Source: Mobula hypostoma (lineage: Eukaryota). Taken from it: 64,000 nt of DNA. The translations under genes and the position numbers were made by a program. The notes beneath the pieces are model-generated. The model made no database searches. It was given only the letters and a program-made list of their open reading frames with translations, and was not told the origin of the DNA. Of this stretch, positions 4,458 to 39,953 are shown piece by piece (the first letter of the stretch is position 1; each line of letters begins with the position of its first letter). The stretch is taken from assembly GCF_963921235.1 (NCBI RefSeq), contig NC_086109.1, forward strand, positions 5,270,001 through 5,334,000, read 5' to 3'.

Positions 4458-4571
4458 CTGTTTCACAGAAGGTTCCATTGAATCCTCTGAGACATTTACA
4501 TTGTGGTCCTATGGTGGTGTTCCAACAGGTCCCATTATTTTGACAGATCATTGAATTACACCTCAGCTTGG
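4458..4571 (-). CDS. Copy A exon 4, EGF-like domain 1
   Basis: 114 nt, phase 1-1, six Cys with EGF spacing, ttccag|...|gtaaga. Confidence 0.92.
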
Positions 4572-7500
4572 CTGGAAATTGGAAATTAAATTAAGGGGTT
4601 TTATTTCTGCTTGGCAGCAAGGGGAGCAAATTATGCCCAGTATCGCAGGAATCTAATTAAAGGTCCATTACTTTAATATACAATCTATACAAGTCCATCA
4701 AAACAACACAGAAAATACATGTAAATATACGTTCTGAATAAAGTTGGTCCTGGATTCTTTAGCCAGAGGGCGGAGAGTCTGTGGAGTTCATTGCCACAGA
4801 CAGCTGTGGTGGCCAAGTCATTTGATTATATTTAAAGTAGAGATTACTGGGTTCTTGATTAGTCAGGATATCAAAGTTTTCAGGGAGAAGGCAGGTGAAT
4901 GTGGTTGAGAGGGATAGTAAATCAGCCATGAGCAGACTCAGTAGACCGAATGGCCTAATTCTGCTCTTATGTTTTATAGTTTTATACCATAATCTTTATC
5001 TACACATTCTATTTTGAATCTTGTTTGTTAAGATGATTAAAATGCATGCCATTGTAGGTGTTAGACCACAGATCATGGAAGAACAGAACACAGGAACCAG
5101 ATCTACTACAGCTCGGGGCGGCAGAGTTCAAAGTTCAATTCTGATGCTCGCTGTAAGAAGATTGTATGTCCTTCCCATGAGTGCATGGGTTTCCACTGGC
5201 CTCTCCATTTCCCTCCCACAGGACAATTTAGTAGATGAGCAGGTTCATTGTAAATTATCCTGGGATTAGGCCTGGGTTAAATCTGGAACGTCCTGTTTGG
5301 TGCTATATTCCTTGGAATGTAGGAGAATGAGGGAGGTTTGATAGAAGTATATAAAATTAAAAGGAGTATAGATAGGGTAAATGCAAGCAGGCTATTTCCA
5401 CTGAGGTTGTGTGGAACTACAACCAGAGGTCATGGGTTGAAAGGTGAAAATTTTAAGGGGAACATGAAGGGAAACTTCTCCACTCAGAGGTTTGTGAGAG
5501 TGTGGAATGAACTGCCAGCTGAAGTGGTGCGTGCGAGCTTGACTTCAATCCTTAAGAGAAGTTTGGATAGCTACAAGGATGGCAGGGTTATGGATGGCTA
5601 CGGTCCCGGTACAGGTCAATGGGAGTAGGCAGCTTAAATAGTTTAGCACAGAATAGATAAGCCAAAGAGCCTGTTTCTCTGCTGTACTTTTCTATTACTT
5701 GATAAATAAATAAATAGTGGTAACTTTCCACTTCCCTTTCCGTCCCGATGCAGGGTCTCGATCCAGAATATCGACTCACACCTTCTGCCAACACAGATAC
5801 TGCTTGACCCACTGAGTCTTCCCAGCGTTCTGTACAACATGATGTTTATTTCCCTTGACCACCTCTAATCCTTCTTTCCATTAAAATCAATGCATGAAGG
5901 GAAAGTTGTCTCATTGGTGGCTAGAACTTGCGTCCTTTAAAGTGAAAGTCCCAGCAGCTTTGTGAGAATGATAAAATGGAGAACCACATACCTGCGTAGA
6001 GTTGCCAGAAGGATTCCTTAAAGAGTGAAAAGAGAAATACATTATTAACAATTGGCTTAGTACAATATCTGGTGAGGACATTATTGGTGGCTTGGTCTCA
6101 GACATCAGTGAATGGGAACAGAAGCAGACGGTGCTGGAAATGCTTAGCAGGATCTTTGGAAGAAGGAGCTAGGCCAACATTATACTCTGATCACCAGACC
6201 AGCTTCACAAGACAAATGTAACCCCCTCACCGTAGCTCAGCGGTGAGAAGGCTACCTTTCCTAAACTGTATTGTATGTATAGGGCTGGTAGGATTTGGCG
6301 TTCAACCAAACAGGAATGTTGGGAATTACCATTAAAGAAACCTTGATTTGAGTGAATGCTGTGTAATTACTGACCACGCACAATTATTGGTCACCAAGGA
6401 ATAACAGATTGTACACCAGCATAAAATTATAAAGAAAGAATATTTACCAATTTCAGCTTTATCAACAATTAATGGGAAAAAGAAAAGGAAGAACAAGAGC
6501 CATTACAATTAAACCAGTATAAATGTGCACATAGACGATGGAGTTTGTTTCTGTAGTGGTTAGGTATACCGCTTTACTCATGGTGCAGAATTCTCATCAC
6601 CATTCACAGGTAGAACTTCCCCTCTTGAACTTCTTCACCTCATGAAGCACTCCTTGCATTAGGGTTTTCCCTTCAGATACAAAGCACCAGGTTTCTTCCT
6701 TGATCCTCTCCCCTCCGCATCTCCCACTTAAAGACCATGAACCCGACCACTGTCTGTCAGATGTCTCTATCCTTCCAGCTCTCTCTAGAACCTTCTCCCC
6801 ACACCACCATCCTGATTGGCTGACACAATGTTCCTAAATTGAACAACATGGCTTCTTATCTTCAGCCAAAACTAAAACACTCTCACCAAAGACACACACT
6901 CCTTTTACAGAAAACTGCTAAAATCAAATCCCTCACAGCGTGGCAGTAGAAATCCTAACCAGGGCATTACAGGTGCTTTGCACTGTGTGTGATTGGTAGT
7001 ACAGTGTTTTACATCTTGGCCCTGGAGTAACACTGTCTCATTTGGCTGTATTCATGGGTATTCTTGTGTGGTTGAATTGAATTGAAATTGAATTCAGTTG
7101 AAGACATAGGAACAGAATTAGGCCATTTGGCCCAAGCCGCCTTTCAGCTTTTACAGCTCCAGGGAAAAGAACCAAATGTGTCCAACCTCTCCTTATTGCA
7201 CTTGCCCTCTAATCCAAGCTGCATCCTGGTGAATCTCTTCTCTAAAGGCTTATCACCCTCCCTGTAATGAGGGGCTCAGAGATGAACAGAAAAGCCAGAT
7301 GTGGCCTCACTACTGTTGTATAAAGCTGCAACATTACATTCTGACTCTTCAACTGAGTGACTTGACCAATAAAGGCAAGCACACCATATGTCTTCTTAAC
7401 CTCCATATCAACCCGTGCAGTCACTTTTGGGGACCCCACAATCCACCGCATCTCACCTGGCATTTCCTGTTTTTATCTCAGATTTTATCAGATTGCCATT

Positions 7501-10435
7501 TCTATGTTTATAAGACCTGAAGACAAAGGAGCCAAGTTAGGCCATTTGGCCCATTGAGTCTGCTTCATCATAACGTCATGGCTGATTTATTATGCCTCTC
7601 AGTTCCATTCCCCTGCATTCTCCCTGTGACCTTTTATGCCCTGACAAATCAGGAACCTATAAATCTCCACTTGGAATATATTTAATGACTGGGCTTCCAC
7701 AGCTGTCTGTGGCAATGAATTCCAGAGATTCACCACCCTCTGCGTAAAGAAATTCCTCCTCACCTCTTCTTTATAGGAATGTCCTTGTACTCTGATGCTG
7801 TGCTGTTTGGTCCTAATGATGGGGCTGCAACATGGAGGTGGTTTATGTTGTCCACTGGAAGACCTGACTGATATTGGTCAGCCTGGTGAGGTCACTGAAG
7901 TCCTGATGGGTAGTGGTAGACATGGTAATGATGTTCCTTAGTCTTGGTTTCAGTTAACTTTCTTCTCTTGAGTCCCCTTAGTCTTGTGTCCACCCATCAA
8001 AGTGACGGATCCTCCCACCAGTAGGACAAGATGGAGTTTATGAGATGAGATGAACTGTGTCATTCTCCAGTAGTGGACAGACTGAAAATATGCTGCATGG
8101 GTTGCCTCATGGTCATGGGTATGGTAACATCAAAGGATACGGGAAGAAGGCAGGAGAATTGGGTTGAGAGGGATAATAAATTAGCCATGATTCATGGAAC
8201 AGACTTGATGGGCCAAATGGCCTAATTCTGCCCCTCTGTCTTATGGTCTTATTATCCTGACCCTTTGAATTCCTTGAGCGGACAATGAATGAGACAACAG
8301 TCTGGAGGGTGGAAAACATCACCATCATCATTATCGTTATGTGCTGTGTTGTATGTGGGCAATCATGGTCTATCCATGACCATGACTGTTCTAGGCAAAT
8401 TTTTCTACAGAAGAGGATTTCCATTGCCTTCTTCTGGGCAGTGTCTTTACAAGATAGGTGACCCCAGCCACTATTGATACTCTTGTCTGTCTGGCGTCAG
8501 TGGTCGCATAACCAGGACTGTGATGTGCACCAGCTGCTCATACGACCATCCACTACCTACTCCCATGGCTTCATATGTCCCTGATCAGGGGGCTAAGCGG
8601 ATGCCACACTTTGCCCAAGGGGGACCTGCAGGTTAGCGGAAGAAAGGAGAACCTTACACTTCCTTTGGTAGAGATGTATCACCACCTCACCATCCAAGGG
8701 GTGAAGAAAACAAGGGGTAAATTGGAATTGGACCTAGAAAATTTGTCCTTACCGTTTTGGAATCATCTTCAAAAACCTCTCGGGCTTCTTCCTTTGAGCA
8801 TGTTTCTTCCACACACTCTCGCTCCAGATTCCCTTGTCTAACCTCTTCTACAAGGTTGTTTGCTCTGCGGATTCGAGACAGGAGCTGCAGAGCGGAAGGT
8901 TTCTGTAGGAAGACTCAATAACACATCCACAGTATTAAACATCTGGTGCCTGTCTGCTGACAGAACTGTGTCATGACGTAAGACTATTACCTCTGAAATG
9001 CTTTAGTGTGTACTTGCACTAAGATTGGAATTGTATAAAAGCTGAAATTTTCTTCTCATTAACTTTAAAAGCTTACACCACGTCCCCACCATCCGAGGTG
9101 GAGATGACTAAGGCCATTCAACAGGGCTCAGGTGAAGCTGTATAGATCAAACCCTGTTCAGCTGATATAATTGATTACAGAAACATTGATAAACTCCAAC
9201 CATACCATCGACTTTGGATGATGGAGACAGGAGGTCATCAATGGCCTTTATCCCACTGGGAGCTAAGGGCCCAAGAAGAAGAAGATGTTAAAAGCCGACA
9301 CTGTCGTTGTCTGTGATGAGACTACACTGTTGAAAGTCACACAACATTCAGGCTGGTCTCTCCAGATATGAAGAGATGAACTGAAGTAACCAAAACTTTA
9401 AATATTATTCTGACAACAGCCTTGACAGGATAAGCAAATAAGATGATGAAACAAATTGCTAGTTACTTATTCACCTTTGCTTCATAAAATGAAAAACAAT
9501 CTCAGTAACCACATCCTCACTAGGATCGCAAGCTTATTCTACTCAGTAAAAAGCAACAGAGATTTCTCATGTTAGCTTTTATAATACATTGTACGGGGAA
9601 ACAACTTCCAGTTATACAGGATCCCTTATAATCAGAAATTAAACAGTCTTTCCACATTTGCCTGGAGTCCACTAGCTGGGAACAAAATCACTGGGAATTC
9701 CTACACAAAATCTGTTTTCTCAATTCCTTGCTTAGCTTAATACAACTAATTTCAAAGTCTACTTGTATTAATCTGTTCATCTTAAGGGATACATTGGTTG
9801 TTGTTTCTCAGTCTCACCCTGGCAGTGGGAGATGGTGAAAGGAAAAGACACAGTGTCTAACAGTGCAGCAAGCTGAATCACCTGCACTGTTCCCTCTAAG
9901 CTGCACAGTAACTGAAATGCTCCCATGCACATAGCCTATGTTAACAAGCAGCAGGAATGAAAACTGATGAGAAAAAGTTACAAAACATAAAAGATTTTCT
10001 TTGACGTACTGTATTTCATTATACCCTCTGATTAATAAATGAAATCAGAAGTGTGTGATTTTTCAATGTTCATTCTAAATATTCATAGTGTGCATGTTAC
10101 AAATAAAAACATTTAAAATGCCATGTAGTTTTCAGGCCGTGTAAAAATTTCCTGCTCAGAACAATGGTTGGTCCGTGCAGCTTTAAAGGAAATTAGAGGA
10201 AACTTTGATCACCTGCCAGGGATGAAGAGAGTGCAGAAGTCTCAAGTTATGATCTGACAATTCCTATCAACAACCTTCACCCAAAGTCACCGCCGTGGGA
10301 GGGACACCGTCAGCTGGGGGAGATGTACGGATGGGAGGAACGGGTTGCACTGAGAGTTCGTTGATACTTACCATCATTTGTGTGACAGCCAGTGAGAAAC
10401 AACAAGATGATCCCATAACTTAGGGCGAGCGTCAT
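4458..10435 (-). CDS. Copy A: Gla-EGF gene exons 1-4 (10435-10372, 8913-8753, 6016-5992, 4571-4458); 3' exon(s) probably off-window
   Basis: [121 protein letters not shown]. Canonical RIRR/AN furin site. No exon-5 homolog seen in 1-4457. Confidence 0.88.
5992..6016 (-). CDS. Copy A exon 3, aromatic stack (ESFWQLYA)
   Basis: 25-nt exon, ctctttaag|...|gtatgt, FWxxY motif. Confidence 0.9.
8753..8913 (-). CDS. Copy A exon 2, propeptide + Gla domain
   Basis: 161 nt; propeptide F-16/A-10/L-6 and RIRR; Glu at positions 6,7,14,16,19,20,25,26,29,32; C17-C22; donor ACG|gtaagg. Confidence 0.95.
9885..10207. mobile_element. hAT-type MITE in intron 1 of copy A
   Basis: TIRs CACTGTTCCCTCTAA / TTAGAGGAAACTTTG (12/15 match); 8-bp TSD ATCACCTG at 9877-9884 and 10208-10215. 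Confidence 0.85.
10372..10435 (-). CDS. Copy A exon 1, signal peptide
   Basis: ATG in context gcaagATG, hydrophobic core GIILLFL, phase-1 donor G|gtaagt; 64 nt. Confidence 0.88.
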
Positions 10436-10527
10436 CTTGCTTTGTCACCGTCCGATCCGATGTATTGGAGAGACACGATGAGAGATTTTGAAAATGGATC
10501 TACCTCACTCAAATCACAGTTACACTC

Positions 10528-10582
10528 TTTATATAATCAGTATTTTTTCTTTGTTTTGCAAATATTTCTGTTAATAAATAAC
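10528..10582 (-). promoter_or_regulatory. Copy A promoter: TATA box and HNF1-like site
   Basis: TATATAAA (minus strand) at 10528-10535, about 95 nt upstream of ATG; GTTAATAAATAAC at 10570-10582. Confidence 0.6.
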
Positions 10583-11249
10583 CAACGATTTTGAAAGACT
10601 TTCACAGGAGTACACAGAGCATGGATTTTTGGAAATAAATTCTGGTAATGTTGACAGCAGAAAAGGGGAGCACCTTTCTTCTCAGTCTGTTCATGCATTG
10701 GAACAGAGAGAATTTCTGGTTGTAAAAGTGCATTAGTTATGCTAAGTCATACAAATATCTTGATTAATGTGTGAAAGCTGTTCAAATCCTCCCAATGTTT
10801 ATCCAAGCGTAAAAGTTACGCTGACTGTGAAACTCCCAACTGCTCGAGTGTTCTGATGTTTGAAATGAATTAGTGTTCTAAGCAATCTCAATGTACCTTC
10901 CCCAAGATCAGAACAATTACAGTTCATTTCCATCAAACATTCGGTTGTTGAACCAACTGGCAAACCCCTGGTCACTACAGTTTGGTAACACAATGACCTC
11001 TGATCATTTTGCACTATAATGGACATTTTCTGGTCAAATTCTTCTGTCTTGAAAAACTTTTGTGTTATTTAAAGGTTCAGAGATTAGTTTTATTTGTCAC
11101 ATGTATGTCGAAATATTGAAGCATACAGTGAAAAGCATCGTTTGCGTCAACGTCCAACACAGTCCAAGGATGTGCTCGTGGGCAGCCCGCAAGTGTCACC
11201 AAGCTTATGATGCTAACATAGCTTGACCACAACTCACCAATCCTAAACC

Positions 11250-12790
11250 GTGCGTCAGGGAGAGGGTCGGGTGGCGTGTGGCACAGGGAGAGGGTCAGAG
11301 TTCATGTGGCACGGGGAGAGGGTCAGGCGGCGAGTGGCACAGGAAGAGGGTCAGGTGTCGCGTGGCACGGAGAGGGACAGGTGTCGTGTGGCACAGGGAG
11401 AGGATCAGGTGGTGTGTGGCACAGGGAGAGGGTCAGAGTTCATGTGGCATGGGGAGAGGGTCAGGGTTCATGTGGCACAGGCAGAGGGTCAGGCGGCGAG
11501 TGGCACAGGAAGAGGGTCAGGTGTCGTGTGGCACGGAGAGGGACAGGTGTCGTGTGGCACAGGGAGAGGATCAGGTGGTGTGTGGCACAGGGAGAGGGTC
11601 AGGTGTGTGGCACGGAGACAGTCAGGTGCCGTGTGGCACGGAGAGGGTCAGGTGTCATGTGGCACGGAGAGGGTCAGGTGTCTTGCGGCACAGGGAGAGG
11701 GTCAGGCAGCGAGTAGCACAGGGAGAGGGTCGGGGTTCATGTGGCACGGGGAGAGGGTCGGGGTTCATGTGGCACAGGCAGAGGGTCAGGCGGCGAGTGG
11801 CACAGGAAGAGGGTCAGGTGTCATGTGGCATGGAGAGGGACAGGTGTCATGTGGCACAGGGAGAGGGTCAGGTGGTGTGTGGCACAGGGAGAGGGTCAGG
11901 TGTCGTGTGGCACAGGGAGAGGGTCAGGTGGTGTGTGGCACAGGGAGAGGGTCAGGTGTGTGGCACGGAGAGAGTCAGGTGTCGTGTGGCACGGAGAGGG
12001 TCAGGTGTCATGTGGCACAGAGAGGGTCAGGTGTCTTGCGGCACAGGGAGAGGGTCGGGGTTCATGTGGCACGGGGAGAGGGTCAGGGTTCATGTGACAC
12101 AGGCAGAGGGTCAGGCCGCGAGTGGCACAGGAAGAGGGTCAAGTTTCATGTGGCACGGAGAGGGACAGGTGTCGTGTGGCACAGGGAGAGGATCAGGTGG
12201 TGTGTGGCACAGGGAGAGGGTCAGGTGGTGAGTGGCACAGGAAGAGGGTCAGGTAGTGAATAATCAAGATATTTGTATTATTTAGCATGACTAATGCACT
12301 TTTACAACCAGAAATTCTCTCTGTTCCAATGCAGTCAGGTGTCGAGTGGCACAGGGAGCGGGTCATGTCATGAGTGACACAGGCAGAGGGTCAGGTGTCG
12401 TGTGACACAGGGAGAGGGTCAGGTCGTGAGTGGCACAGATGTCATGTGGCAGAGGGAGAGGGTCAGGTAGCGAGTGGCACAGGGAGAGTGTCTGGTGGTG
12501 AGTGGCACAGGGAGAGGGTCAGGTAGCGAATAATCAAGATATTTGTATTATTTAGCATGACTAATGCACTTTTACAACTAGAAATTCTCTCTGTTCCAAT
12601 GTGGTCAGGTGGCATGTGGCTTAGGGAGAGGGTCAGGTCGCGAGTGGCACAGGTGGTGAGTGGCACAGGGAGAGGGTCAGGTCGCGAGTGGCACAGGGAG
12701 AGGGTCAGGTGTCGTGTGGCACAGGGAGCGGGTCTGATTATGAGCGCTGCACAATGGGGGTCAGGTGCTGAGTGCAGGGAAGGGGTCGAG
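11250..12790. repeat. G-rich minisatellite (~25-28 bp unit GTGGCACAGGGAGAGGGTCAGGTGTCGT)
   Basis: Dozens of variant units; explains the overlapping repetitive ORFs. Confidence 0.95.
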
Positions 12791-14725: not shown

Positions 14726-14820
14726 CCCGAGAATGGCGTTGAAATGGATGTTAAGTTAGCCATGATAGAATGGGGTGGCAGACTCAATGGGCCAATTTTG
14801 CTTCTATATCATATTTTCTT

Positions 14821-15641: not shown

Positions 15642-15647
15642 TTTAAT
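15642..15647 (-). terminator. Poly(A) signal ATTAAA, copy B
   Basis: 55 nt after the stop codon; conserved in copy C. Confidence 0.55.
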
Positions 15648-15701
15648 TGTAAATATTGATTCTGATTTAAGATCCATAACAAGTCCTTCACGACTGCCTG
15701 T

Positions 15702-15820
15702 TTATGATTCAGAATTTGCATAGCATCCTTCAGCTGGGCAAATGCAGGTGAACTTGTTGATTCCGTCTATACAAATCGTTCTTGATGGGCATGCGGGCGT
15801 TAAGTCACACTCATTGATAT
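15702..15820 (-). CDS. Copy B terminal exon 5, calcium-binding EGF then stop
   Basis: gctgttccag|AT ATC AAT GAG TGT gives DINEC...[12 protein letters not shown]...C then TAA; ATTAAA at 15642-15647. Confidence 0.88.
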
Positions 15821-18800
15821 CTGGAACAGCAATAAAGTGAATTTATTATCAAAGTACATATATGTCATGATACAGCTGCCCTGAGCTTCATTTTCCTGTG
15901 GGCATTCACAGAGAATACAAAGAAACACAATAGAATCAATGAAAAACTGCCCTCGACAAAGACGGGCAACCAAACAATGTGCAAAAGACAACAAACTGTA
16001 CTAGTAGATAAAAAGGAAACAACAATAATAAAAATAAACAAGCAATAAACATCCATAAACCTGAGTTGTAGAGTCTTTAAAAGTGAGTCCACAGGTCAGT
16101 GTTGGAGTGCGTGATGAACCCTTTTGGTTCAAGAGTCTGATGGTTGAGTGGTAATAATCGTTCCTGAACTTTGTGACGTGGGACTTGAGGCTCCCGTACC
16201 TCCTTCCTGATAACAGCAGTGAGGAGAGAACAAGGACTGGATGGTGGAGGCCCTTGATGATGATGACAGCGTTCTGTGTACACGTGCTCAATGGTGGGGA
16301 GGGCTTTACCTACGATAGACTGGGCTGTATCCTCTACCTGTTGTTGGTTTCTCCATTCAAGACACATCGAACCTTTGCAAGCTTCTAAGAAAGGAGAGGC
16401 ACAGGGAAGTTCACAATCTGAATGCATTTGGTCGATTGGCGCATTCGAAGGATGCAGCGGCTCATTCCCATTGGTTGCCTTGTGTGCCACAGCACCACAG
16501 TCCATGTTCGGCCGCCTCAGGAGTATAAGATGAGCAAGTGTGAGAGACTGGCTGTCTCCCCTTTGTCTCCAGGGACTCATGTACATATTTGTCTGGTGGT
16601 GTATCGACTACTATTCTCTCTGTGACTGTATAGCTGAGGACTGGGTCTTTAAGTCACAGTGTCACCTAGCAGGCGTCTGGGATCATGGTGGGTCATCGAA
16701 CAATCTCAGTGGGCTGGGGGTTCTGGACTATATACATACATATTCTGTGTCGTATTTTTTTACTGATATTCTAGATGGGTTTGTATGTGTGAGGATTGGG
16801 GATCAAGCCGGGCAGGGTGGGGGGGGGGGTGTGGGGATGTTGGGACTCTGTTATTCCGTGAATGTGATCTTGTGTGTGACAGTTGGTACTGTGTTTTGCA
16901 CCTTGGCCCCGGAGTAACACTGTCTCGTTTGACTGTATTCATGAGTATTCATGTATGGTTAAATGGCAATTAAACTTGAATTAGTTTGAAAACGCAAACA
17001 CGAGGAATTCTGCAGATGCTGGAAATTCAAGCTGCCTGTGGCCATCAAACTTTACAACTCCTCCCTTGGAGGGTCAGACACCCTGAGCCAATAGGCTGGT
17101 CCTGGACTTATTTCCTGGCATAATTTATTTATTACTATTTAATTATTTATGTTTTTATTACTATTTAATTATTTATGGTGCAACTGTAACAAAAACCAAT
17201 TTCCCTCGGGATCAATAAAATATGACTATGATTATGACTATGACTAACACACATCAAAGTTGCTGGTGAACGCAGCAGGCCAGGCGGCATCTCTAGGAAG
17301 AGGTACAGTCGACGTTTCAGGCCGAGACCCTTCGTCGGGACTAACTGAAAGAAGAGATAGTAAGAGATTTGAAAGTGGGAGAGGGAGGGGGAGATCCAAA
17401 ATGATAGGAGAAGACTGGAGGGGGAGGGATGGAGCCAAGAGCTGGACAGTTGATTGGCAAAAGGAATATGAGAGGATCATGGGACAGGAGGCCCGGGGAG
17501 AAGGAAAAGGGGGAGGGGGGAGGAAAAACCCAGAGGATGGGCAAGGTGTATAGTCAGAGGGACAGAGGGAGAAAAAGGAGAGTGAGAGAAAAAATGTGTG
17601 TATATAAATAAATAATGGATGGGGTACGAGGGGGAGGTGGGGCATTAACGGAAGTTAGAGAAGTCAATGTTCATGCCATCAGGTTGGAGGCTACCCAGAC
17701 GGAATATAAGGTGTTGTTCCTCCAACCTGAGTGTAGCTTCATCTTTACAGTAGAGGAGGCCGTGGATAGACTTATCAGAATGGGAATGGGATGTGGAACT
17801 GGTGCCAAAACCTTACACAGTAGACCCTCAGAAGTTCCACTCCAGTGTGTCCAAGAAACTACTGGGCAGCAAGCAGTACCAGAGTAGAGTGATTGCATTT
17901 CACAGCAGAGATACAGGCTCTTTGGCCCAACTCTGCCATGCTAACCATGGTGCCCATTGTTTGCCCCATAAACTTCTAAAACATTCCTGTCCAACTGTCT
18001 TCTAAACGTATGGTAAACCCATGCAAGACAGGGTGTTTGAGCCCCCATGTTACTCTCAGATACCATAACCCATCATAGTTCTGATCAAGATATTACTGCT
18101 TCCTAATGTCTACAGTCAGAATTCAACGCTTGAGAATGAAAGTTCTCTTGCCTGTTTCACAGAAGGTTCCATTATATCCTCCGAGACATTTACATTGTAC
18201 TCCCGTGAAGGTATTCTGACAGGTCCCATTATTTTGGCAGGTAGTTGAAATACACATCAGCCTGGCTGGAAATTGGAAGTGAAATTAAGGGGTTTTATTT
18301 CTGCATGACAGCAAGGGGAGCAAATTACATTGAGTATCATAGGAATTCGAGTGGATTGAAATCTTTATCCTGGTGTTTGCAATTCTAATTAAAAATCCAT
18401 TACTGCAGTATACAATCTTCACAAGTCCATCAAAACAACAAAGAAAATACATGTAAATAAATGTTCTGAATGAAATAGGTCCCTGATTCTTTAGCCAGAG
18501 GGTGGAGAGTCTGTGGAGTTCATTGCCACAGACAGCTGTGGTGGCCAAGTCATTTGATTGTATTTAAAGTGGAGGTTACCGGGTTCTTGATCAGTCAGGG
18601 CATCAAAGTTTGCAAGGAGAAGGCAGGTGAATGTGGTTGAGAGGGATAGTAAATCAGCCATGGCTAGATTGGCATAATTCTGCTCCTATGCCTTATGGTT
18701 TTATACCTTAATATTCATCCACACATTCCATTTTGAATCTTATTAGTTAAGAGGATTAAAACACATGCCATCGTCAACTGTAGGACCATAGATCAGTGAA

Positions 18801-21800
18801 GAACAGAGCACAGGAACCAACCCTATTACAGCTCGGAGCAACAGAGTTCAGAGTTCAATTCTAACGCTCGCTGTAAGCAGATTGTATGTCATTCCCATGA
18901 GTGTATGGATTTCCACCGGGCTCTCCAGTTTCCTCCCACAGGAGAATTTAGTAGATTAGCAGGTTCATTGTAAATTGACCTGGGATTAGGCCTGGGTTAA
19001 ATCGGAGCATTGCTGGGCAGTGCAGCTTGTGGAACACGAAAGGGCTGGTGTGCACTGTATTTCTTGGAACGCAGAAGATTGGGTTGGTCTACAACTAGAG
19101 GTCATGGGTTAAGGGTGAAAGGTGAAAAGTTGAAGAGGAGCATGAGGGGAAACTTTTTCACTCAGAGGGTTAATGAGAGTGTGGAATGAACAGCCAAAGT
19201 GGTGCATGCAAGCTCTATTTCAATGTTGAAGAGAAGTTTGGATGATAGGGACATGGAGGGCTATAGTCCCAGTACAGGTCAATGGGACTAGGAGCTTTAA
19301 TGGTTCAGCATAGACTAGATGAGCTTTCTGTGCTGTTATTTTCTATGACTCATAAATAAATAAATAAACAAACAGTGGTAACTTTCCACTTCCCTTTTGG
19401 TCCCAATGCGGGGTGTCGATCCAGAATATCGACTCACACCTTCTGCCAACACAGATACTGCTCGGCCCACTGAATCTTCCCAGCGTTCTGTACAACATGA
19501 TGTTTATTTCCCTTGACCATCTTTAATCCTTTTTTCCATTAAAATCAGTACATGAAGGGAAAGTTGTCTCATTGGTGGCTACAACTTGCATTCCTTAATG
19601 TGAAAATCCCAGCGGCTTTGTGAGAATGATAAAATGGAGAACCACATACCTATGTAGAGTTTCCAGAAGAATTCCTTAAAGAGTGAAAAGAGAAATACAT
19701 TAATAACAGTTGGCCTCAGTTCAATATCTGGTGAGGACATTATTGGTGGCTTAGTCTCAGATGTTAGTGAATGGGAACAGAAGCAGACGGTGCTAGAAAT
19801 GCTCAGCCAAATCTTTGGAAGAAGGAAAATGGTCACCATTACTCTGTGGTCACCAGACCAGCTTCATAAGACAAATGTAACCCCCTCACCTTAGCTAAGC
19901 AGTGAGAAGGTCACCTTTTATAAACAATATATGTATAGTGCCGGTATGATTTGGGGTTCAACCAAACAGGAATGTTGGGAATTACCATTAAAGAAACCTC
20001 GATTTGAGCGAATGCTGTGTAATTACTGACCACGTTCAATTATTGGTCACCAAGGAATAACAGATCATACACCATCATAAAATTATAATGAAAGAATATT
20101 TACCAATTTCAGCTTTATTAACAGTTAATAAAAAAAAGAAAAGGAAAAACAAGAGCCAATTACAGTTCAACCAGTCTAAGAGTGCACATAAACGATTGAG
20201 CTCGTTTCTGTAGTGATTGGGTATACCGCTTTATTCACAGTGCAGAATTCTCATCACCAATCACAGGTAGAACTTCCCTTCTTGAACTTCTTGGCCGCAT
20301 GAAGCACTCCTTGCATTAGGATTTTCCCTTCAGGTACAAAGCACCAGGTGTCTTCCTTGATCCTCTCCCCTCCGCATCTCCCACTTAAAGACCATGAACC
20401 CAACCACTGTCTGTCAGAAGCCTCTATCCTTCCAGATCTCTCTAGAACTTTCTCTCCATACCACCATCTTGATTGGCTGACACAACATTGCTAAGTTGAA
20501 CAACATGGCTTCTTATCTTCAGCCAAAACTAAAACTCTCTCACCAAAGACACACACTGCTTTTACAGAAAACTGCTAAAATCAAATCCCTCACAGTGTGG
20601 CAGTAGAAATCCTAACCAGGGCATTACAGGTGCTTTGCACTGTGTGTGATTGGCAGTACAGTGTTTTACACCTTGGCCCTGGAGTAACACTGTCTCATTT
20701 GGCTGTATTCATAGGTGTTCTTTTTATGGTTGAATTGAATTCAATTGAAGACATAGGAACAGAATTAGGCCATTTAGCCCAAGCCTCCTTTCAGCCTTTA
20801 CAGCTCCAGGGAAAACAACCAAATGTGTCCAACCTCTCCTTATTACACTTGCCCTCTAATCTAAGCTGCATCCTGGTGAACATCTGTTGTGCCCCCTCTA
20901 AACCTTTAACATTCTTCGTGTTCTGGGAAGGAGCACCTTACACCTCCTTTGGTAGAGTTATGTCACCAGCTTACTACCCAAGGAGGGAGGAAAACAAGGG
21001 CTAAATTGGAATTGGACCTGGAAAATTTGTCCTTACCGTTTTGGAGTCATCTTCCAAGACCTCTTGGATTTCTTCCTTTGAGCATGTTTCTTCCACGCAC
21101 TCTCGCTCCAGAGATTCTCTTTGGACTTGAGACAGGAGCTGCAGAGCTGAAGGTTTCTGTAAAAAGACTCAATAACACATCCACAGTATTAAACATCCGG
21201 GTGCTGATGGAACTGTGTCATGACATCAGACTATTACCTCTGAAATGCTTTAGTGTGTAGTTGCACTGAGATTGGAATTATATAAAAGCTGAAATTTTCT
21301 TCTCATTAACTTTAAAAGCCTACACCACGTCCCCACCATCCGAGGTGGAGATGGCTAAGGCCATTCAACAGGGCTGTGGTGAAGCTGTATAGATCAAACC
21401 CTGTTCAGCTGATACAATCGAATAGAGAAACATTGATAAACCCCAACCGTACCATCAACTTTGGACGATAGAGACAGGAGCTCATCAACCCCCCTTTGTC
21501 CCACTGGGAGCTAAGAGCTCAAGAAGAAGAAGACGTTAAAAGCCGACACTGTCGTTGCCTGTGATGAAACTATGCTGCCGAAAGTCACACAACATTCAGG
21601 GTGGTCTCTCCAGATATGAAAAGATGCAAAATATAATCCTCACTAGTATCCCAGGCTTCATGTACTCAGCTAAAAAGCAGCAAAAATTTCTCATGATAAC
21701 TTTTATGATGCATTATATGGGAAAACAATCTTCCAGTTATACAAGATCCTTCATAATGAGAAACTAAACAGTTTTTCCACATCTCCCTGGAATCCACTAG

Positions 21801-24742: not shown

Positions 24743-24877
24743 CTTGCTTTGTCACCGTCCGATCCGATGTATTGGAGAGACACAATGAGAGATTTTGAAA
24801 ATGGATCTACCTCACTCAAATCACAATTACACTCTTTCCATAGTCAGTATTTTTTTCTTTGTTTTCCAAGTATTTCT

Positions 24878-24890
24878 GTTAATAATTAAC
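24878..24890. promoter_or_regulatory. HNF1 consensus palindrome, copy B
   Basis: GTTAATAATTAAC is a perfect match to GTTAATNATTAAC. Confidence 0.6.
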
Positions 24891-24985
24891 GAACGATTTT
24901 GAAAGACTTTCACAGGAGTACATTGATTTTTGGAAATAAATTCTGGTAATGTTGACAGCAGAAAAGTGGAGCACCTTTCTTCTCA

Positions 24986-28620: not shown

Positions 28621-28664
28621 GAGCTCACAAGGAACATATCAGTTTAAGGGTCAAATTGGCGCAG

Positions 28665-29994: not shown

Positions 29995-30000
29995 TTTAAT
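29995..30000 (-). terminator. Poly(A) signal ATTAAA, copy C
   Basis: Same position relative to the stop as in copy B. Confidence 0.55.
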
Positions 30001-30054
30001 TGTAAATATTGATTCTGATTTAAGATCCATAACAAGTCCTTCACGACTGCCTGT

Positions 30055-30173
30055 TTATGATTCAGAATTTGCATAGCATCCTTCAGCTGGGCAAATGCAG
30101 GTGAAATTGTTGATTCCGTCTACACAAGTCGTTCCTGGTGGGCATGCGGGCGTTAAGTCACACTCATTGATAT
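30055..30173 (-). CDS. Copy C terminal exon 5, cbEGF then stop
   Basis: [39 protein letters not shown]; matches C-x-D-x4-F-x-C-x-C hydroxylation pattern. Confidence 0.9.
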
Positions 30174-33100
30174 CTGGAACAGCAACAAAGTAAATTTATT
30201 ATCAAAGTACATATATGTCATGATACAGCTGCCCTGAGCTTCATTTTCCTGTGGGCATTCACAGAGAATACAAAGAAACACAATAGAATCAATGAAAAAC
30301 TGCCCTCGACAAAGACGGGCAACCAAACAATGTGCAAAAGACAACAAACTGTACTAATAGATAAAAAAGAAACAACAATAATAAAAATAAACAAGCAATA
30401 AACATCCATAAACCTGAGTTGTAGAGTCTTTAAAAGTGAGTCCACAGGTCAGTGTTGGAGTGCGTGATGAACCCTTTTGGTTCAAGAGTCTGATGGTTGA
30501 GTGGTAATAATCGTTCCTGAACTTTGTGACGTGGGACTTGAGGCTCCCGTACCTTATAACACCCTTTCTTTTCCAGATCCCTGCTCCCCTGTCTTTGACG
30601 ATCGCTCGATCCTGTTCCATCAGCTGTTGACAAAGGGCACTGGTGCCAAAACCTTACACAGTAGACCCTCAGGAGTTCCACTCCATTGTCGCCAACTCTG
30701 ATCCAAGAAACTACTGGGCAGCAAGCAGTCCCAGAGTAGAGTCATTGCATTTCACAGCAGAGATACAGGCTCTTTGGCCCAACTCTGCCATGCTAACCAT
30801 GGTGCCCATTGTTTGCTCCATAAACTTCTAAAACATTGCTGTCCATCTACCTGTCCAACCGTCTTCTAAACATACGGTAAACCCATGCAAGACAGGGTGT
30901 TTGAGCCCCAATGCTACTCTCAGATACCATAACCCATCATAGTTCTGATCAAGATATTACTGCTTCCTAATGTCTACAGTCAGGATTCATCGCTTGAGAA
31001 TGAAAATTCTCCTACCTGTTTCACAGAAGGTTCCATTAAATCCTCCGAGACATTTACATTGTACTCCCGTGGCGGTGTTCTGACAGGTCCCATTATTTTG
31101 GCAGGTAGTTGAATTACACTTCTGCCTGGCTGGAAATTGGAAGTGAAATTGAGGAGTTTTATTTCTGCATGACAGAAAGGGGAGCAAAAGACGTCCAGTA
31201 TCGCAGGAATCCGAGTGGATTGAAATCTTTATCCTGGTCTTTGTAATTCTAATTAAAAATCCATTACTGCAGTATACAATCTACACAAGTCCATCAAAAA
31301 AACACAGAAAATACATGTAAATAAATGTTCTGAATGAAATAGGTCCCTGATTCTTTAGCCAGAGGGTGGAGAGTCTGTGGAGTTCATTGCCACAGACAGC
31401 TGTGGTGGCCAAGTCATTTGGTTATATTTAAAGTGGAGGTTACTGGGTTCTTGATCAGTCAGGGCATCAAAGTTTGCAAGGAGAAGGCAGGTAAATGTGG
31501 TTGAGAGGGATAGTAAATCAGCCATGGCTAGATTGGCATAATTCTGCTCCTATGCCTTATGGTTTTATACCTTAATATTCATCCACACATTCCATTTTGA
31601 ATCTTGTTAGTTAAGAAGATTAAAACACATGCCATTGTCAACTGTAGGACTATAGATCAGTGAGGAACAGAGCACAGGAACCAGCCCTATTACAGCTCGG
31701 AGCAACAGAGTTCAGAGTTCACTTCTGACGCTCACTGTAAGAAGATTGTACGTCATTCCCATGAGTGCATGGATTTCCACCGGGCTCTCCAGTTTCCTCC
31801 CACAGGACAATTTAGTAGATTAGCAGGTTCGTTGTAAATTGACCTGGGATTAGGCCTGGGTTAAATCGGAGCATTGCTGGGCAGTGCAGCTTGTGGAACA
31901 CGAAAGGGCTGGTGTGCACTGTATTTCTTGGAATGCAGAAGATTGGGTTGGTCTACTGCTAGAGATCATGGGTTAAGGGTGAAAGGTGAAAAGTTGAAGG
32001 GGAACATGAGGGGAAACTTTTTCACTCAGAGGATCATGAGAGTGTGGAATGAGCAGCCAAAGCAAGTGGTGCATGCGAGCTCAATTTCAATGTTTAAGAG
32101 AAGTTTGTATGGTAGGGACATGGAGGGCTATAGTCCCAGTGTAGGTCAATGAGACTAGGCAGTTTAAATGGTTCAGCATAGACTAGATGAGCTTTCTGTG
32201 CTGTTATTTTCTATGACTCATAAATAAATAAATAAACAAACAAACAGTGGCAACTTTCCACTTCCCTTTTGTCCCGATGCGGGGTCTTGATCCAGAATAT
32301 CGACTCACACCTTCTGCCAACACAGATACTGCTTGGCCCACTGAGTCTTCCCAGCGTTCTGTACAACATGATGTTTATTTTCCTTGACAACCTTTAATCT
32401 TTCTTTCCATTAAAATCAGCGCATGAAGGGAAAGTTGTCTCATTGGTGGCTAGAACTTGCATTCCTTAAAGTGAAAGTCCCGGCTTTGTGAGAATGGTAA
32501 AATGGAGAACCACATACCTATGTAGAGTTTCCAGAAGGATTCCTTAAAGAGTAAAAAGAGAAATACATTAATAACAATTGGCCTTAGTTCAATATCTGGT
32601 GAGGACATTATTGGTGGCTTTGTCTCAGACGACAGTGAATGGGAACAGAAGCAGACACTGCTGGCAATGCTGAGCAGGATCTTTGGAAGAAGGAAAGTGG
32701 TCACCATCACACTTTGATCACCGGACCAGCTTCATAAGACCACAAGATATAGGAACAGAATTAGACCATTCGTCCCAACGAGTTTGCTCATGTCTGATTT
32801 ATTATCCCTCTCAACTTCATTCTCCTACCTTCTTCCCGGAAGATGAATATTCATGTGAATACTTTAATACATCAACTGGTTTCATGCATTATTAGATTAA
32901 TGAATACATAGAATGGGCGAGACTGTCCCTGGAGAAAAAAGTTCAGTTTTGGTCACCCTACTATAGGAAAATTGTCATTAAGTTGAAAAAAGTGCAAAAA
33001 TTGATTTATTTCGTTACTGAGATACATCGCAGAATCGGCCCTTCTGGCCCATTGAGCCACACTGGCCAGCAAACCCCCGCTTTAATCTAAGCCTGATCAT

Positions 33101-39100: not shown

Positions 39101-39805
39101 TCCAAGTAAATAACATCCATCTGTTCCCCTCTATCCGCTGCACTTAATCCAGGTTAACACCTCACAATTATCTAAGGTAGGCACATGGATCTTAGAAAAA
39201 TGGAGAGCCTTATGGGGTTTGTTGATCTTGGAGTTTGTTAAAAGGTCTGCACACATTGCGGGCCAAAAAGCCTGTATTGTGTTGTAATGTTCTATGTCCT
39301 ATGATCTAGACTTCTAGTTCGCAGACAGAGAAATTGGTGGTGATATAAACAATGAACTCAATATTTTCTTTGATATATGGTATTCCATTATACCTTCAAT
39401 TAATAAAAAAAATCAGAAGTATGTGATGTTTCAATTTTCATTCTAAATATTCATTGTATGCATATTACAAATAAAAAAACATTTAAAGTGCTGTGTAGTT
39501 TTCAGGCCATGTAAAAATGTCCTGCCCAGAGCAATGGTTGGTCCGTGTAGCTTTAAAGAAAAATAGGGGAAACTTTGATCACCTGCCAGGGATGAAGAGA
39601 ATGCAGAAATCTCAAGCTATGATCTGACAATTCCTGTCAACAACCTTCACCCAAAGTCACCGCCGTGGGAGGAACACCGTCAGCTGGGGGAGATGTACAG
39701 ACGGGAGGAACAGGTTGCACTGAGAGTTCGTTGATACTTACCATCATTTGTGTGACAGCCAGTGAGAAACAACAAGATGATCCCGTAACTTAGGGTGAGC
39801 TTCAT
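30055..39805 (-). CDS. Copy C: complete 5-exon secreted Gla-EGF-cbEGF protein (160 aa), no protease domain. Exons 39805-39742, 35989-35829, 32542-32518, 31129-31016, 30173-30055
   Basis: Spliced translation [160 protein letters not shown]. All introns GT-AG, phases 1/0/1/1 are compatible, total 483 nt, ATTAAA at 29995-30000. Confidence 0.9.
31016..31129 (-). CDS. Copy C exon 4, EGF1
   Basis: 114 nt inside ORF 30987..31187; donor |gtagga. Confidence 0.92.
32518..32542 (-). CDS. Copy C exon 3 (ESFWKLYI)
   Basis: 25 nt, splice sites intact. Confidence 0.9.
35829..35989 (-). CDS. Copy C exon 2, propeptide + Gla
   Basis: 161 nt; [30 protein letters not shown]. Confidence 0.93.
36742..39140 (-). 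mobile_element. Two tandem truncated CR1 LINEs in copy C intron 1
   Basis: ORFs 36978..37601 and 38381..38695 contain RPHLEYC.QFW.P; KFADDTK / QFADDTK motifs in adjacent ORFs. Confidence 0.85.
39742..39805 (-). CDS. Copy C exon 1, signal peptide
   Basis: 64 nt, identical to copy B exon 1. Confidence 0.88.
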
Positions 39806-39940: not shown

Positions 39941-39953
39941 GTTAATAATTAAC
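39941..39953. promoter_or_regulatory. HNF1 consensus palindrome, copy C
   Basis: GTTAATAATTAAC. Confidence 0.6.

Follow-up and report, generated by a model that had tools for sequence, protein, structure and literature searches.

Three tandem genes of the ray Mobula hypostoma probably encode short secreted Gla-EGF proteins of an old chordate family

In the genes of the vitamin-K-dependent clotting proteases the front half is composed of a pro-Gla exon of ~161 nt, a 25-nt stack exon and a 114-nt EGF1 exon, with phases 1/0/1/1. Protein Z is a non-catalytic vitamin-K-dependent plasma protein which works as a membrane-bound partner and keeps a full, inactive protease domain binding its serpin. 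Protein S and Gas6 (~670 residues) carry four EGFs followed by two C-terminal LamG (SHBG-like) domains, while the short PRRG1-4 proteins, dominated by one clotting-type Gla domain, span the membrane with a single helix, carry a proline-rich cytoplasmic tail and lack EGFs. MFG-E8 and EDIL3 are small secreted proteins which combine EGF domains with a phosphatidylserine-binding module; they bind lipid via discoidin C domains and carry an integrin-binding RGD within an EGF. In the clotting proteases the consensus for Ca binding and Asp hydroxylation resides in EGF1, and EGF2 is of the C1r type with neither (PMC9669250, Tables 2-3).

The window, i.e. the whole 64-kb stretch of Mobula hypostoma DNA that was analysed and which contains zero N, harbours three tandem Gla-EGF genes on its minus strand, transcribed leftwards in the order C, B, A. 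Three minus-strand paralogues had been predicted here from the sequence, and their positions were confirmed: the limits of the gene set, 4458 and 39805, agree base-exactly with the 3' end of exon 4 in gene A and with the start codon of gene C. The spliced models are 100% identical to RefSeq models, which are themselves predictions, namely P0153 for C (160 aa), P0155 for B (150 aa) and P0151 for A (170 aa, compared over the 121 residues within the window), and the CDS spans and gaps of the RefSeq assembly reproduce the distances in the window exactly (9751, 5313 and 5267 nt). Exons of 64, 161, 25, 114 and 119 nt are joined at intron phases 1/0/1/1. All introns of A, B and C are bounded by AG/GT, the exon-4 donor of B, which is GC, being the sole exception. 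The fifth exon of A lies outside the window, ~230-400 nt past base 1, and A 14-232 is homologous to B 16064-16278. The individual features are:

39805-30055, minus strand: CDS of gene C, span 9751 nt
39742..39805, minus strand: C exon 1, ATG and 21-aa signal peptide, phase-1 donor; 100% identical to P0153
35829..35989, minus strand: C exon 2, propeptide (F-16, A-10, L-6), site R-V-P-R, and Gla domain; Pfam Gla E=1.8e-13
32518..32542, minus strand: C exon 3, 25-nt aromatic-stack exon
31016..31129, minus strand: C exon 4, EGF1; Pfam EGF E=1e-5
30055..30173, minus strand: C exon 5 (terminal), signature Ca-binding EGF, 6 residues and TAA
29995..30000, minus strand: C ATTAAA, candidate poly(A) signal, 55 nt past the stop
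24742-15702, minus strand: CDS of gene B
24679..24742, minus strand: B exon 1, signal peptide; identical to C exon 1
21037..21167, minus strand: B exon 2, propeptide and Gla domain with 30-nt in-frame deletion; Pfam Gla E=3.9e-11
19650..19674, minus strand: B exon 3, aromatic-stack exon
18152..18265, minus strand: B exon 4, EGF1; GC donor in place of GT
15702..15820, minus strand: B exon 5 (terminal), signature EGF with 4 derived replacements at family-conserved positions, then TAA
15642..15647, minus strand: B ATTAAA, 55 nt past the stop
10435 to ~400 nt to the left of window base 1, minus strand: CDS of gene A, span 10,834 nt
10372..10435, minus strand: A exon 1, signal peptide; 100% identical to P0151
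8753..8913, minus strand: A exon 2, propeptide (R-I-R-R) and the most canonical Gla domain of the three; Pfam Gla E=1.4e-16
5992..6016, minus strand: A exon 3, aromatic-stack exon
4458..4571, minus strand: A exon 4, EGF1
10436..10647, minus strand: promoter-proximal block of A, conserved across four units
24743-24948, minus strand: promoter block of B, equivalent to that of A
39806-40011, minus strand: promoter block of C, equivalent to that of A
59711-59922, minus strand: promoter block of D, equivalent to that of A
59647..59710, minus strand: orphan fourth exon 1, "D", with its own promoter block
49622..49797, minus strand: hypothetical, unannotated terminal exon, like the helical tail of neighbouring "type-2" Gla genes (E=0.002)

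In all three products a 21-aa signal peptide precedes a propeptide with the carboxylase-recognition residues F-16, A-10 and L-6, a Gla domain, the stack and an EGF, just as the original prediction had described. With Pfam Gla (PF00594, threshold 27 bits) exon 2 alone reaches 60.8 bits in A, 43.4 bits in B and 50.8 bits in C, and the whole proteins reach 54-74 bits (E=1e-14 to 1e-20), matches far stronger than chance would produce. The internal C-x4-C disulfide of the Gla domain and the aromatic-stack exon are present in every copy. The mature chains contain 11 Glu in A and 12 in C, as predicted for these two, and 10 in B. A basic cleavage site in front of a complete Gla N-terminus is found in A (R-I-R-R) and C (R-V-P-R) and is missing in B; the mature chain of C begins with Thr, the usual residue being Ala. 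The best solved-structure match of A exon 2 is the propeptide plus Gla domain of human factor X (E=1.2e-16), and propeptide and Gla domain align over their full length with the stretch of factor X in the gamma-carboxylase-related entry PDB 9bvl, the propeptide of A residue for residue. Factor X is also the best PDB match of the whole protein (E=3e-25). The AlphaFold model, with a mean pLDDT of 54, is unusable.

Exon 4 of each gene is recognised by Pfam EGF (E=4.5e-6 to 2.7e-4); EGF1 of C, which bears three N-glycosylation sequons, is devoid of the Ca/hydroxylation consensus, and a pattern scan of A, B and C for EGF_CA and Asx hydroxylation was positive for the terminal EGF only, EGF1 being negative. 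The second EGF, encoded by exon 5 and of the D-I-N-E-C type, scores as hEGF, and the EGF pair best resembles Notch EGFs among solved structures. An EGF2 of the PF14670 (C1r-like clotting) type was not found by Pfam in any of the products. The label "light-chain-only" given to these genes in the original prediction is misleading, as their second EGF, Notch-like and with the consensus for Ca binding and hydroxylation, is not the C1r-type EGF2 of clotting proteases (PMC9669250). The last Cys of the terminal EGF is followed by a polar tail of only 6-16 residues, and neither a LamG domain nor a transmembrane segment is detected in the products by Pfam and sequence scan. In B and C the TAA follows directly on the D-I-N-E-C EGF, and the conserved ATTAAA that had been noted in both genes is indeed present; that of C sits within sequence homologous to the ancestral coding tail, and its role in polyadenylation is that of a candidate.

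Compared to the described systems, the three genes share with F10, F7, F9 and PROC the exon sizes (161/25/114 nt) and phases, the propeptide residues and the clotting-type Gla domain, but unlike these they contain no activation peptide and no protease. Moreover, their EGF arrangement is the reverse of that in clotting proteases, the consensus being located in EGF2 instead of EGF1 (PMC9669250). Propeptide, Gla domain and EGF1 are factor-X-like; truncated copies of factor X were nevertheless rejected, the last EGF being a Ca-binding, Notch-like module. Protein Z provides the nearest functional analogy, yet where PROZ retains its protease domain, A, B and C stop right after the second EGF. With protein S and Gas6 they have in common that the Gla domain leads into an array of EGFs, Ca-binding ones of the D-x-N-E-C type among them, but they contain no thrombin-sensitive/loop region, no LamG (SHBG-like) domains and no TAM-receptor-binding part, and their family measures 150-276 aa. 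PRRG2 is among the solved-structure matches, and PRRG1-4 are likewise short with a dominant clotting-type Gla domain; in contrast to these, A, B and C possess two EGFs and a short polar tail after the stack, and no hydrophobic stretch. MFG-E8 and EDIL3 are analogous in function only. The EGF region of EDIL3 is a weak solved-structure match, but the lipid-binding module of A, B and C would be Gla and not discoidin C, and RGD occurs in none of them.

Judging from sequence, A, B and C belong to an old, unnamed chordate Gla-EGF family whose members comprise shark and ray proteins of 134-172 aa, a coelacanth protein, a Ciona savignyi protein and plankton transcripts. The short Gla-EGF-EGF architecture recurs in ten other species. 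The hallmark of the family is a near-invariant terminal EGF with the signature C-P-x-G-x-x-C-V-D-G-I-N-x-F-x-C-x-C-P-x-x-G-C, matched as a regular expression by 20 of 21 members including A, B and C, with the stop at most ~45 residues further on. An alignment of 16 sequences contains 23 invariant columns, 12 of them in this terminal EGF, and in a blast search with EGF2 family members rank first. The coelacanth member (M3XKV6, P0161; 276 aa, four EGFs) is automatically named "protein S"; that of Ciona savignyi (H2YJC2, 246 aa) combines the family front with the terminal signature EGF. Relatives from the Tara Oceans metatranscriptome measure 169-290 aa and have basic terminal tails; among them the isoform P0134 (169 aa; source listed as "merc") contains exactly two EGFs, longer isoforms also being present. 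As these are metatranscriptome proteins, mRNAs of such an architecture exist. The coelacanth, Ciona and plankton members resemble A, B and C in the propeptide-Gla-stack front, in the terminal signature EGF (62-70% identity to that of sharks) and in the stop soon thereafter, whereas they differ in their tails and in having 2-3 additional Ca-binding EGFs that separate EGF1 from the terminal one. No teleost or tetrapod member is found among the matches of the family search. We found this family described nowhere in the literature, although its tunicate members may be named in Kulman et al. 2006. That study reportedly deals with Gla proteins of Ciona. Gene A and other species encode, in the same exon as the terminal EGF, a short C-terminal tail (10 aa in A) which is absent in B and C; by this comparison the tailless state that the TAA creates in these two genes is derived.

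Synteny with F7, F10 and PROZ, which had been proposed as a check, points elsewhere: the locus is not a clotting cluster but is flanked by an IRF-family gene upstream of the cluster and a DUF4504 gene 4.1 kb downstream of the A stop. Among the elasmobranch members examined, adjacency to DUF4504 is also seen in Mobula birostris and in the basking shark, Cetorhinus maximus. Rays have at least three copies, and in the basking shark one is seen, beside the DUF4504 gene. The copy numbers thus bear out a tandem expansion in stingray-type rays (three copies or more), and to this extent the predicted lineage expansion stands; the family as such, however, is no novelty of rays or chondrichthyans, since relatives exist in coelacanth, Ciona and plankton. 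The cluster members exhibit signs of gene conversion. Downstream of the orphan exon D no Gla or EGF exon was detected in the window by homology or by the control HMM described below; the candidate exon at 49622..49797 is in frame with D exon 1, with which it would encode 79 aa.

Whether all three copies work is a question on which the substitution patterns bear. Among these within-window paralogues dN/dS amounts to 0.74-1.17, and the exons are about as similar to one another as the introns are, a picture which, taken alone, looks neutral. It would be expected if only A, which occupies the ancestral position as judged by DUF4504, were functional, with B and maybe C as young or decaying duplicates kept intact-looking by gene conversion and slow elasmobranch mutation. 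The single basking shark copy next to the DUF4504 gene and the loss of the C-terminal tail by TAA in B and C agree with this. So does the state of B: its 30-nt deletion takes away the basic cleavage site together with ten residues at the start of the Gla domain, i.e. the membrane-insertion end, its exon-4 donor is GC, in M. hypostoma it deviates from the other members at five conserved columns, and its differences are not depleted at conserved columns (p=0.11 and 0.61). Gene C, however, is unchanged relative to A at all 50 family-conserved columns in spite of 28 replacements at the 108 variable ones (p=8.4e-6), and its ortholog in M. birostris is near-identical. On this pattern A and C look functional, with fast-changing surfaces. 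Furthermore, splice sites, Cys residues and the EGF signature are intact in all copies (with the GC donor in B), and Hypanus P0156 carries the deletion of B too, with an open frame, as does Hemitrygon P0001 in its middle unit. From its presence in Mobula, Hypanus and Hemitrygon, which implies that the B lineage has long been intact, the deletion is taken to be old and common to stingrays. The five departures at conserved positions, on the other hand, imply that constraint on B is relaxed or shifted, and the gene has probably changed in function or is decaying. We regard a sole function of A as unlikely, albeit deserving serious consideration.

A quite improbable alternative is that the products are read-through chimeras of adjacent units, with multiple Gla and EGF domains, instead of separate proteins of 150-170 aa. 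The end of exon 4 and the start of exon 2 are both in phase 1, so that skipping of exon 5 and of the next exon 1 preserves the frame; the RefSeq model Hemitrygon P0001 (288 aa) joins exons of three units, and Heptranchias P0212 and P0335 fuse a type-2 gene with a Gla-EGF-EGF gene. Fused models in tandem arrays are, however, a frequent prediction artefact, and single-unit models exist in M. hypostoma, M. birostris, Hypanus and Cetorhinus. A second propeptide in mid-chain would be unusual, and every unit has its own start codon, signal peptide and conserved promoter block. Each of these blocks contains a 14-nt AT-rich palindrome-like element 134-147 nt 5' of the ATG, which has four matches in the window compared to 0.01 expected by chance.

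Hydroxyapatite is, like membranes, a ligand of Gla residues. As with MGP or Gla-rich protein, the target might be calcium mineral (tessellated cartilage, dentine or otoconia) rather than phosphatidylserine-containing membranes, and the family is indeed kept in cartilaginous fishes and not seen among the teleost and tetrapod matches. Yet the Gla domain is of the clotting type, with membrane-insertion residues, internal disulfide and stack, and not of the MGP/BGP/UCMA type, and relatives exist in tunicates, which have no calcium-phosphate skeleton. We consider a mineral target very doubtful.

Protease exons were searched for throughout the window. A tblastn search with 324 proteins, ~100 of them full-length F7, F7i, F9, F10 and PROZ, yielded zero matches beyond the known exons; a profile HMM of activation peptide plus protease, built from 99 such proteins, hit no ORF of the window at E<1, while a light-chain control HMM recovered all eight Gla/EGF exons from the same window; and Pfam trypsin has no match in the A, B and C products. 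The core of the original prediction, a tandem family of secreted, protease-less Gla-EGF-cbEGF genes outside all named vitamin-K-dependent classes, is supported by the analysis. That the exons are the front halves of factor X/VII/protein Z-type genes with overlooked protease exons would suit the NCBI names ("coagulation factor X-like", "protein Z-like" for copy B, "venom prothrombin activator ... catalytic subunit-like") and a front half closest to factor X, but is scarcely credible given the in-frame TAA in exon 5 of B and C with no usable donor ahead of it, the want of any protease-like ORF across the 64 kb, the start of the next unit's exon 1 5.3 kb beyond the preceding stop (C to B, B to A), the DUF4504 gene 4.1 kb after A, and the short architecture shared by ten other species.

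The best explanation, to which we assign a probability of roughly 60%, is that A, B and C are three tandem paralogues of an ancient chordate family of small secreted vitamin-K-dependent proteins without an enzymatic or receptor-binding end domain. The roles named in the original prediction, such as decoy, opsonin or mineral regulator, are candidates. The function would be that of a Ca-dependent phospholipid-binding adaptor or decoy, and the steps envisaged draw on established knowledge of Gla and cbEGF modules. The propeptide would dock to gamma-carboxylase in the ER, whereupon the 10-12 Glu are predicted to become Gla, and a furin-type enzyme would cleave after R-I-R-R in A and R-V-P-R in C. 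Ca2+ would then fold the Gla domain such that the hydrophobic residues 4, 5 and 8 may enter phosphatidylserine-exposing membranes. For the terminal EGF, Asp beta-hydroxylation and binding of Ca2+ at the EGF1-EGF2 junction are predicted, and its conserved face may bind a putative partner. Membrane binding together with such a partner face would make the proteins non-catalytic adaptors or competitors on anionic membranes. As membrane-bound partners or competitors devoid of enzymatic activity they would be similar to protein Z or to a clotting-factor light chain on its own, the module that binds the partner being a different one. Production in the liver as a plasma protein is suggested by the AT-rich element 5' of the genes and by a front half like that of factor X.

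A more far-reaching reading, which we put forward tentatively, is that these genes descend from a Gla-EGF gene of early chordates that predates coagulation, that this gene was the source of the clotting light chains, and that its direct descendants form a separate signalling or clearance system which expanded in rays. If this is true, the gene was kept in tunicates, which to our knowledge have no clotting cascade, in coelacanth and in elasmobranchs, and teleosts and tetrapods apparently lost it. Exon shuffling would have built the light chains of the clotting proteases out of its front half, and its invariant terminal EGF would recognise a putative, conserved receptor or partner on cells that expose phosphatidylserine. 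There would then be a separate vitamin-K-dependent signalling or clearance system, tandemly expanded and diversified in stingray-type rays, where positive selection may have acted on the surfaces of the EGFs.

Motif scans in six frames, an alignment of the window with itself and a check of the splice sites reveal three tandem units on the minus strand, designated A, B and C, which are 12-15 kb long each and share 85-94% identity at the DNA level. This bears out the original prediction of three paralogous minus-strand genes. Each unit follows the same five-exon plan with exon sizes of 64, 161, 25, 114 and 119 nt and intron phases 1/0/1/1. Sizes and phases of this kind characterise the front half of the genes for factors VII, IX and X and for protein C.

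Exons of the three genes (minus strand, start to end of each exon)
Gene C, exons 1 to 5: 39805-39742, 35989-35829, 32542-32518, 31129-31016, 30173-30055
Gene B, exons 1 to 5: 24742-24679, 21167-21037, 19674-19650, 18265-18152, 15820-15702
Gene A, exons 1 to 4: 10435-10372, 8913-8753, 6016-5992, 4571-4458

Splice sites are canonical throughout the three genes with the exception of a GC donor following exon 4 of B, and the window is free of any N. Exon 5 of A lies off the left edge of the window. Since positions 14-232 of A match positions 16064-16278 of B and since the public assembly gives the CDS of A a span of 10,834 nt, the stop codon of A is expected about 400 nt past base 1.

Modules encoded by the five exons
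Exon 1: signal peptide of 21 aa (A, B and C)
Exon 2: propeptide with F-16, A-10 and L-6, and Gla domain; basic cleavage site R-I-R-R in A and R-V-P-R in C
Exon 3: aromatic stack (A, B and C)
Exon 4: ordinary EGF (EGF1), E=4.5e-6 to 2.7e-4
Exon 5: D-I-N-E-C EGF fitting the patterns for calcium binding and Asp hydroxylation (pattern scan)

The Pfam Gla profile matches exon 2 with E=1.4e-16 in A, 1.8e-13 in C and 3.9e-11 in B. The mature proteins contain 11 (A), 12 (C) and 10 (B) Glu residues, the first two counts being those predicted. In exon 2 of B a 30-nt in-frame deletion is present, the cleavage site being gone together with the Gla domain's first ten residues. In B and C a TAA codon follows six residues past the last cysteine of the terminal EGF, and downstream of it ATTAAA occurs at 15642-15647 in B and at 29995-30000 in C. 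Signal peptide, propeptide, aromatic stack, EGF and a D-I-N-E-C-type EGF running into TAA in B and C had all been claimed beforehand, and this anatomical description proved right in every detail checked. An AlphaFold2 model of P0151, the public counterpart of A, computed from a 16-sequence family alignment, is of low quality (mean pLDDT 54, pTM 0.27).

Within EGF1, coded by 4458-4571 in A, 18152-18265 in B and 31016-31129 in C, three N-glycosylation sequons are found in both A and C, and two of these (N-G-T in the second loop and before the last cysteine) recur in most ray and shark members. A pattern scan finds the C-x-S-x-P-C motif in EGF1 of two shark members, those of Cetorhinus and Heterodontus; EGF1 of rays has lost it.

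The same architecture, in proteins of 134-172 aa, is encountered in Mobula birostris, Hemitrygon akajei, Hypanus sabinus and Pristis pectinata as well as in Cetorhinus maximus, Mustelus asterias, Scyliorhinus canicula, Heterodontus francisci and Heptranchias perlo. Relatives that agree in front and terminal EGF, but have two or three additional calcium-binding EGFs inserted between them, occur in coelacanth (M3XKV6, 276 aa), in Ciona savignyi (H2YJC2, 246 aa) and among Tara Oceans metatranscriptome proteins. The latter exist as isoforms in which the number of EGFs varies from two to five; one isoform (P0134, 169 aa) corresponds exactly to Gla-EGF-terminal EGF. Twelve of the 23 invariant columns in the 16-sequence alignment fall into the terminal EGF, whose signature separates the family from all other EGF proteins fetched. 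A, B and C hence belong to an old chordate family and did not arise as recent truncations of factor X. No teleost, tetrapod, skate or chimaera member was among the matches listed from these word-seeded searches. Our search of the literature brought up no account of a Gla-EGF-EGF family without protease in fishes; a 2006 paper on Ciona Gla proteins by Kulman and co-workers may already name the tunicate member.

Among proteins of solved structure, factor X is the nearest match of the propeptide-Gla-EGF1 part (exon 2, E=1.2e-16; whole protein, E=3e-25), and the EGF pair aligns best with Notch EGFs. A PF14670-type EGF2 is not matched in the products by Pfam. According to Tables 2-3 of PMC9669250, clotting proteases from every vertebrate class possess an EGF1 with calcium-binding and hydroxylation consensus and a C1r-type EGF2 with neither. 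Compared with these entries, the order is reversed in the present proteins, in which the patterns are found only in the second EGF. Sirtilins (PMC6850207) are full proteases and form a class distinct from the Gla-EGF-EGF genes. The prediction that the products match none of the named vitamin K-dependent classes stands. Their architecture is genuine and conserved and has gone unrecognised until now among vitamin K-dependent proteins, and we regard the statements on anatomy and family, taken together, as very probably correct.

A second, uncharacterised type of gene is present in the same cluster of rays and sharks, represented by the public predicted proteins P0163, P0003, P0152, P0164, P0165, P0017 and the N-terminal half of P0212. 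Signal peptide, propeptide, Gla domain and stack are as in A, B and C, after which comes a helical tail of 50-100 aa between two cysteines; these type-2 proteins comprise 135-181 aa and are devoid of EGFs. The type-2 gene of M. hypostoma is located outside the window, past its right edge and just downstream of an IRF-family gene.

Taken alone, dN/dS values of 0.74-1.17 among A, B and C and an exon identity no higher than that of introns look neutral. At the protein level, if other species alone are used to define conservation, none of 50 conserved columns and 28 of 108 variable ones differ between A and C (p=8.4e-6), so that their cores are kept and their surfaces evolve fast. B shows five departures at family-conserved columns, and its differences are not depleted there; constraint on this copy is relaxed or redirected. 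A B-type deletion with open frame exists in Hypanus and Hemitrygon, too, and its being common to these genera and Mobula points to an old B lineage. It is in view of these data that one may ask whether A is the only functional copy. The neutral-looking rates and the departures of B are to be weighed here with the preserved core of C and the open frame of B-type copies in other genera, and we deem this alternative rather unlikely.

Around exon 5, a stretch of about 670 nt is near-identical in B and C, 549 flanking bases showing 4 differences. By comparison, a 33-nt segment of the terminal EGF (15753-15785 in B, 30106-30138 in C) contains five replacements and no silent change (p=0.011), four of the five being derived in B and affecting family-conserved positions. 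This cluster could be due to positive selection, to decay or to micro-conversion from an unseen copy. Exon 2 of A (8753-8913) and that of the type-2 gene are a single residue apart within M. hypostoma and 4-5 residues apart between the two Mobula species (P0163, P0002 and P0003 compared); this closer similarity within the species indicates probable gene conversion across the cluster. At the position where B and C have TAA, A and other species have another 3-45 residues coded by the same exon, and past the TAA the frame still resembles the tail of the Heptranchias protein; the TAA of B and C is derived. A different reading, by which this TAA lies two codons before a mutated donor (A-C-A-G/G-C) once leading to protease exons, was rejected because the frame past the TAA retains its likeness to a tail which Heptranchias codes in the same exon, because the tail of A is contiguous with EGF2, its CDS span fitting a single terminal exon, and because the window contains no protease exons.

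Further elements of the array
59249-59925: fourth promoter block and signal-peptide exon, D; exon 1 at 59710-59647, minus strand
49797-49622, minus strand: candidate terminal exon ten kb beyond D; it has a stop and its acceptor is good, AATAAA following after about 150 nt
10569-10582, 24877-24890, 39940-39953 and 59844-59857, minus strand: 14-nt AT-rich palindrome-like element
11256-12734: G-rich minisatellite between the 3' end of B and the promoter of A, made of about 36 copies of a 28-nt unit, with periods of 270-325 nt at a higher order
22709-23593, minus strand: reverse-transcriptase ORF in intron 1 of B (Pfam RVT_1, E=3.8e-26)
36.9-38.7 kb: retrotransposon insertion in intron 1 of C, ORF pieces without Pfam match

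Searches of 40.4-59.6 kb with tblastn (word size 2), blastn (word size 9) and a profile HMM yielded no Gla or EGF exons for D. The ORF at 49797-49622 weakly resembles the type-2 helical tail (E=0.002); hypothetically, its in-frame junction with exon 1 of D would give a secreted, Gla-less peptide of 79 aa. In the public assembly no gene is called within 10 kb upstream of C, a range which just reaches this ORF. The 14-nt element, which is reminiscent of a hepatocyte nuclear factor 1 (HNF1) site, precedes all four start codons by 134-147 nt. It has four matches in the window, with 0.01 expected by chance, all of them inside the duplicated block. The minisatellite gives rise to long spurious plus-strand ORFs without Pfam match; among this repeat and several transposon-like ORFs, Pfam matched nothing except the one reverse-transcriptase ORF. 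Retrotransposon insertions explain the differences in intron 1 size between the copies. Rfam detected no RNA family in the window.

A cluster-representative search (1.8 billion, queried with exon 2 of A) and cluster look-ups led to short predicted proteins of rays and sharks, and our spliced models are 100% identical to RefSeq proteins of Mobula hypostoma.

Public counterparts of the three genes
C: P0153 with 160 aa, annotated as 'venom prothrombin activator oscutarin-C catalytic subunit-like'
B: P0155 with 150 aa, annotated as 'vitamin K-dependent protein Z-like'
A: P0151 (XP_062921247.1) with 170 aa, of which the 121 residues inside the window are identical

CDS spans and spacings in GCA_963921235.1 (9751, 5313 and 5267 nt) agree to the nucleotide with the distances measured in the window. 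A, B and C are therefore already predicted publicly, but under names taken from the nearest full-length matches. Automatically assigned labels of this sort ('factor X-like', 'protein Z-like', 'venom prothrombin activator catalytic subunit-like', 'protein S') hide the family and are misleading. Some public models join neighbouring genes: P0001 of Hemitrygon akajei (288 aa) combines exons of three Gla-EGF units, and P0212/P0335 of Heptranchias perlo (356/359 aa) combine a type-2 gene with a Gla-EGF-EGF gene. These fusions are either read-through transcripts or prediction artefacts of tandem arrays. That the products of A, B and C are themselves read-through chimeras of this kind, as such models might invite one to think, is very improbable, the public models of the three genes being separate proteins of 150-170 aa.

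On the evidence of its modules, the product is predicted to be a secreted protein made up of a propeptide of the carboxylase type, a Gla domain of the clotting type, a plain EGF and a calcium-binding EGF, and of nothing else. By analogy with known modules, it would first undergo gamma-carboxylation in the ER, followed by removal of the propeptide in A and C. Calcium-dependent folding would then allow the hydrophobic residues 4, 5 and 8 to enter membranes exposing phosphatidylserine, EGF1 and EGF2 would form a calcium-stiffened rod, and the invariant terminal EGF is a candidate site for a partner. Hence a non-catalytic adaptor or competitor on anionic membranes may be envisaged, protein Z or an isolated factor light chain being, in principle, the nearest analogues. 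We put this mechanistic reading at about even odds. A role in binding mineral instead of membranes, for the same Gla-bearing product, strikes us as very improbable. Overall, the combination of anatomy, family and membrane-directed mechanism is the best explanation, with a probability of roughly 0.6.

The predicted protease-less architecture was confirmed by tblastn with 324 proteins (about 100 of them full-length F7, F7i, F9, F10 and PROZ) and by a motif scan, neither of which detected anything protease-like in the window. A profile HMM for activation peptide and protease, built from 99 proteins and run at maximum sensitivity, had no match at E<1 among the complete set of 2,794 stop-to-stop ORFs of at least 15 aa, and a control light-chain HMM recovered all eight Gla and EGF exons. 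Exon 1 of the next unit begins 5.3 kb past each stop (C to B and B to A). That protease exons were missed is hardly conceivable.

Synteny with F7/F10/PROZ, which it had been proposed to check, is not what the neighbourhood displays: a type-2 Gla gene and, before that, an IRF-family gene lie upstream of the cluster, and a gene encoding a 270-aa DUF4504 (PF14953) protein is located 4.1 kb past A, as it is in M. birostris and basking shark. PF14953 is presumably the family of human C1orf74, a neighbour of IRF6. If so, the cluster sits in the C1orf74-IRF6 interval and not in the F7-F10-PROZ region.

The list of vitamin K-dependent protein families is short and seldom grows. It would be extended by a new architecture if a soluble Gla-EGF-cbEGF family has been kept in tunicates, sharks and coelacanth alike. 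The family bears on how the Gla-EGF front end of clotting proteases arose before any clotting cascade, and provides a concrete gene which can be traced by synteny (the interval from the IRF-family gene to the DUF4504 gene) and by exon structure. The ray array represents a compact case of diversification, with gene conversion, clustered replacements in the binding EGF and an old Gla-truncated paralogue, and the automatic names are no evidence for proteases or venom-like activators in rays. In elasmobranchs, the family is a candidate for regulating, without enzymatic activity, haemostasis or the removal of cells that expose phosphatidylserine.
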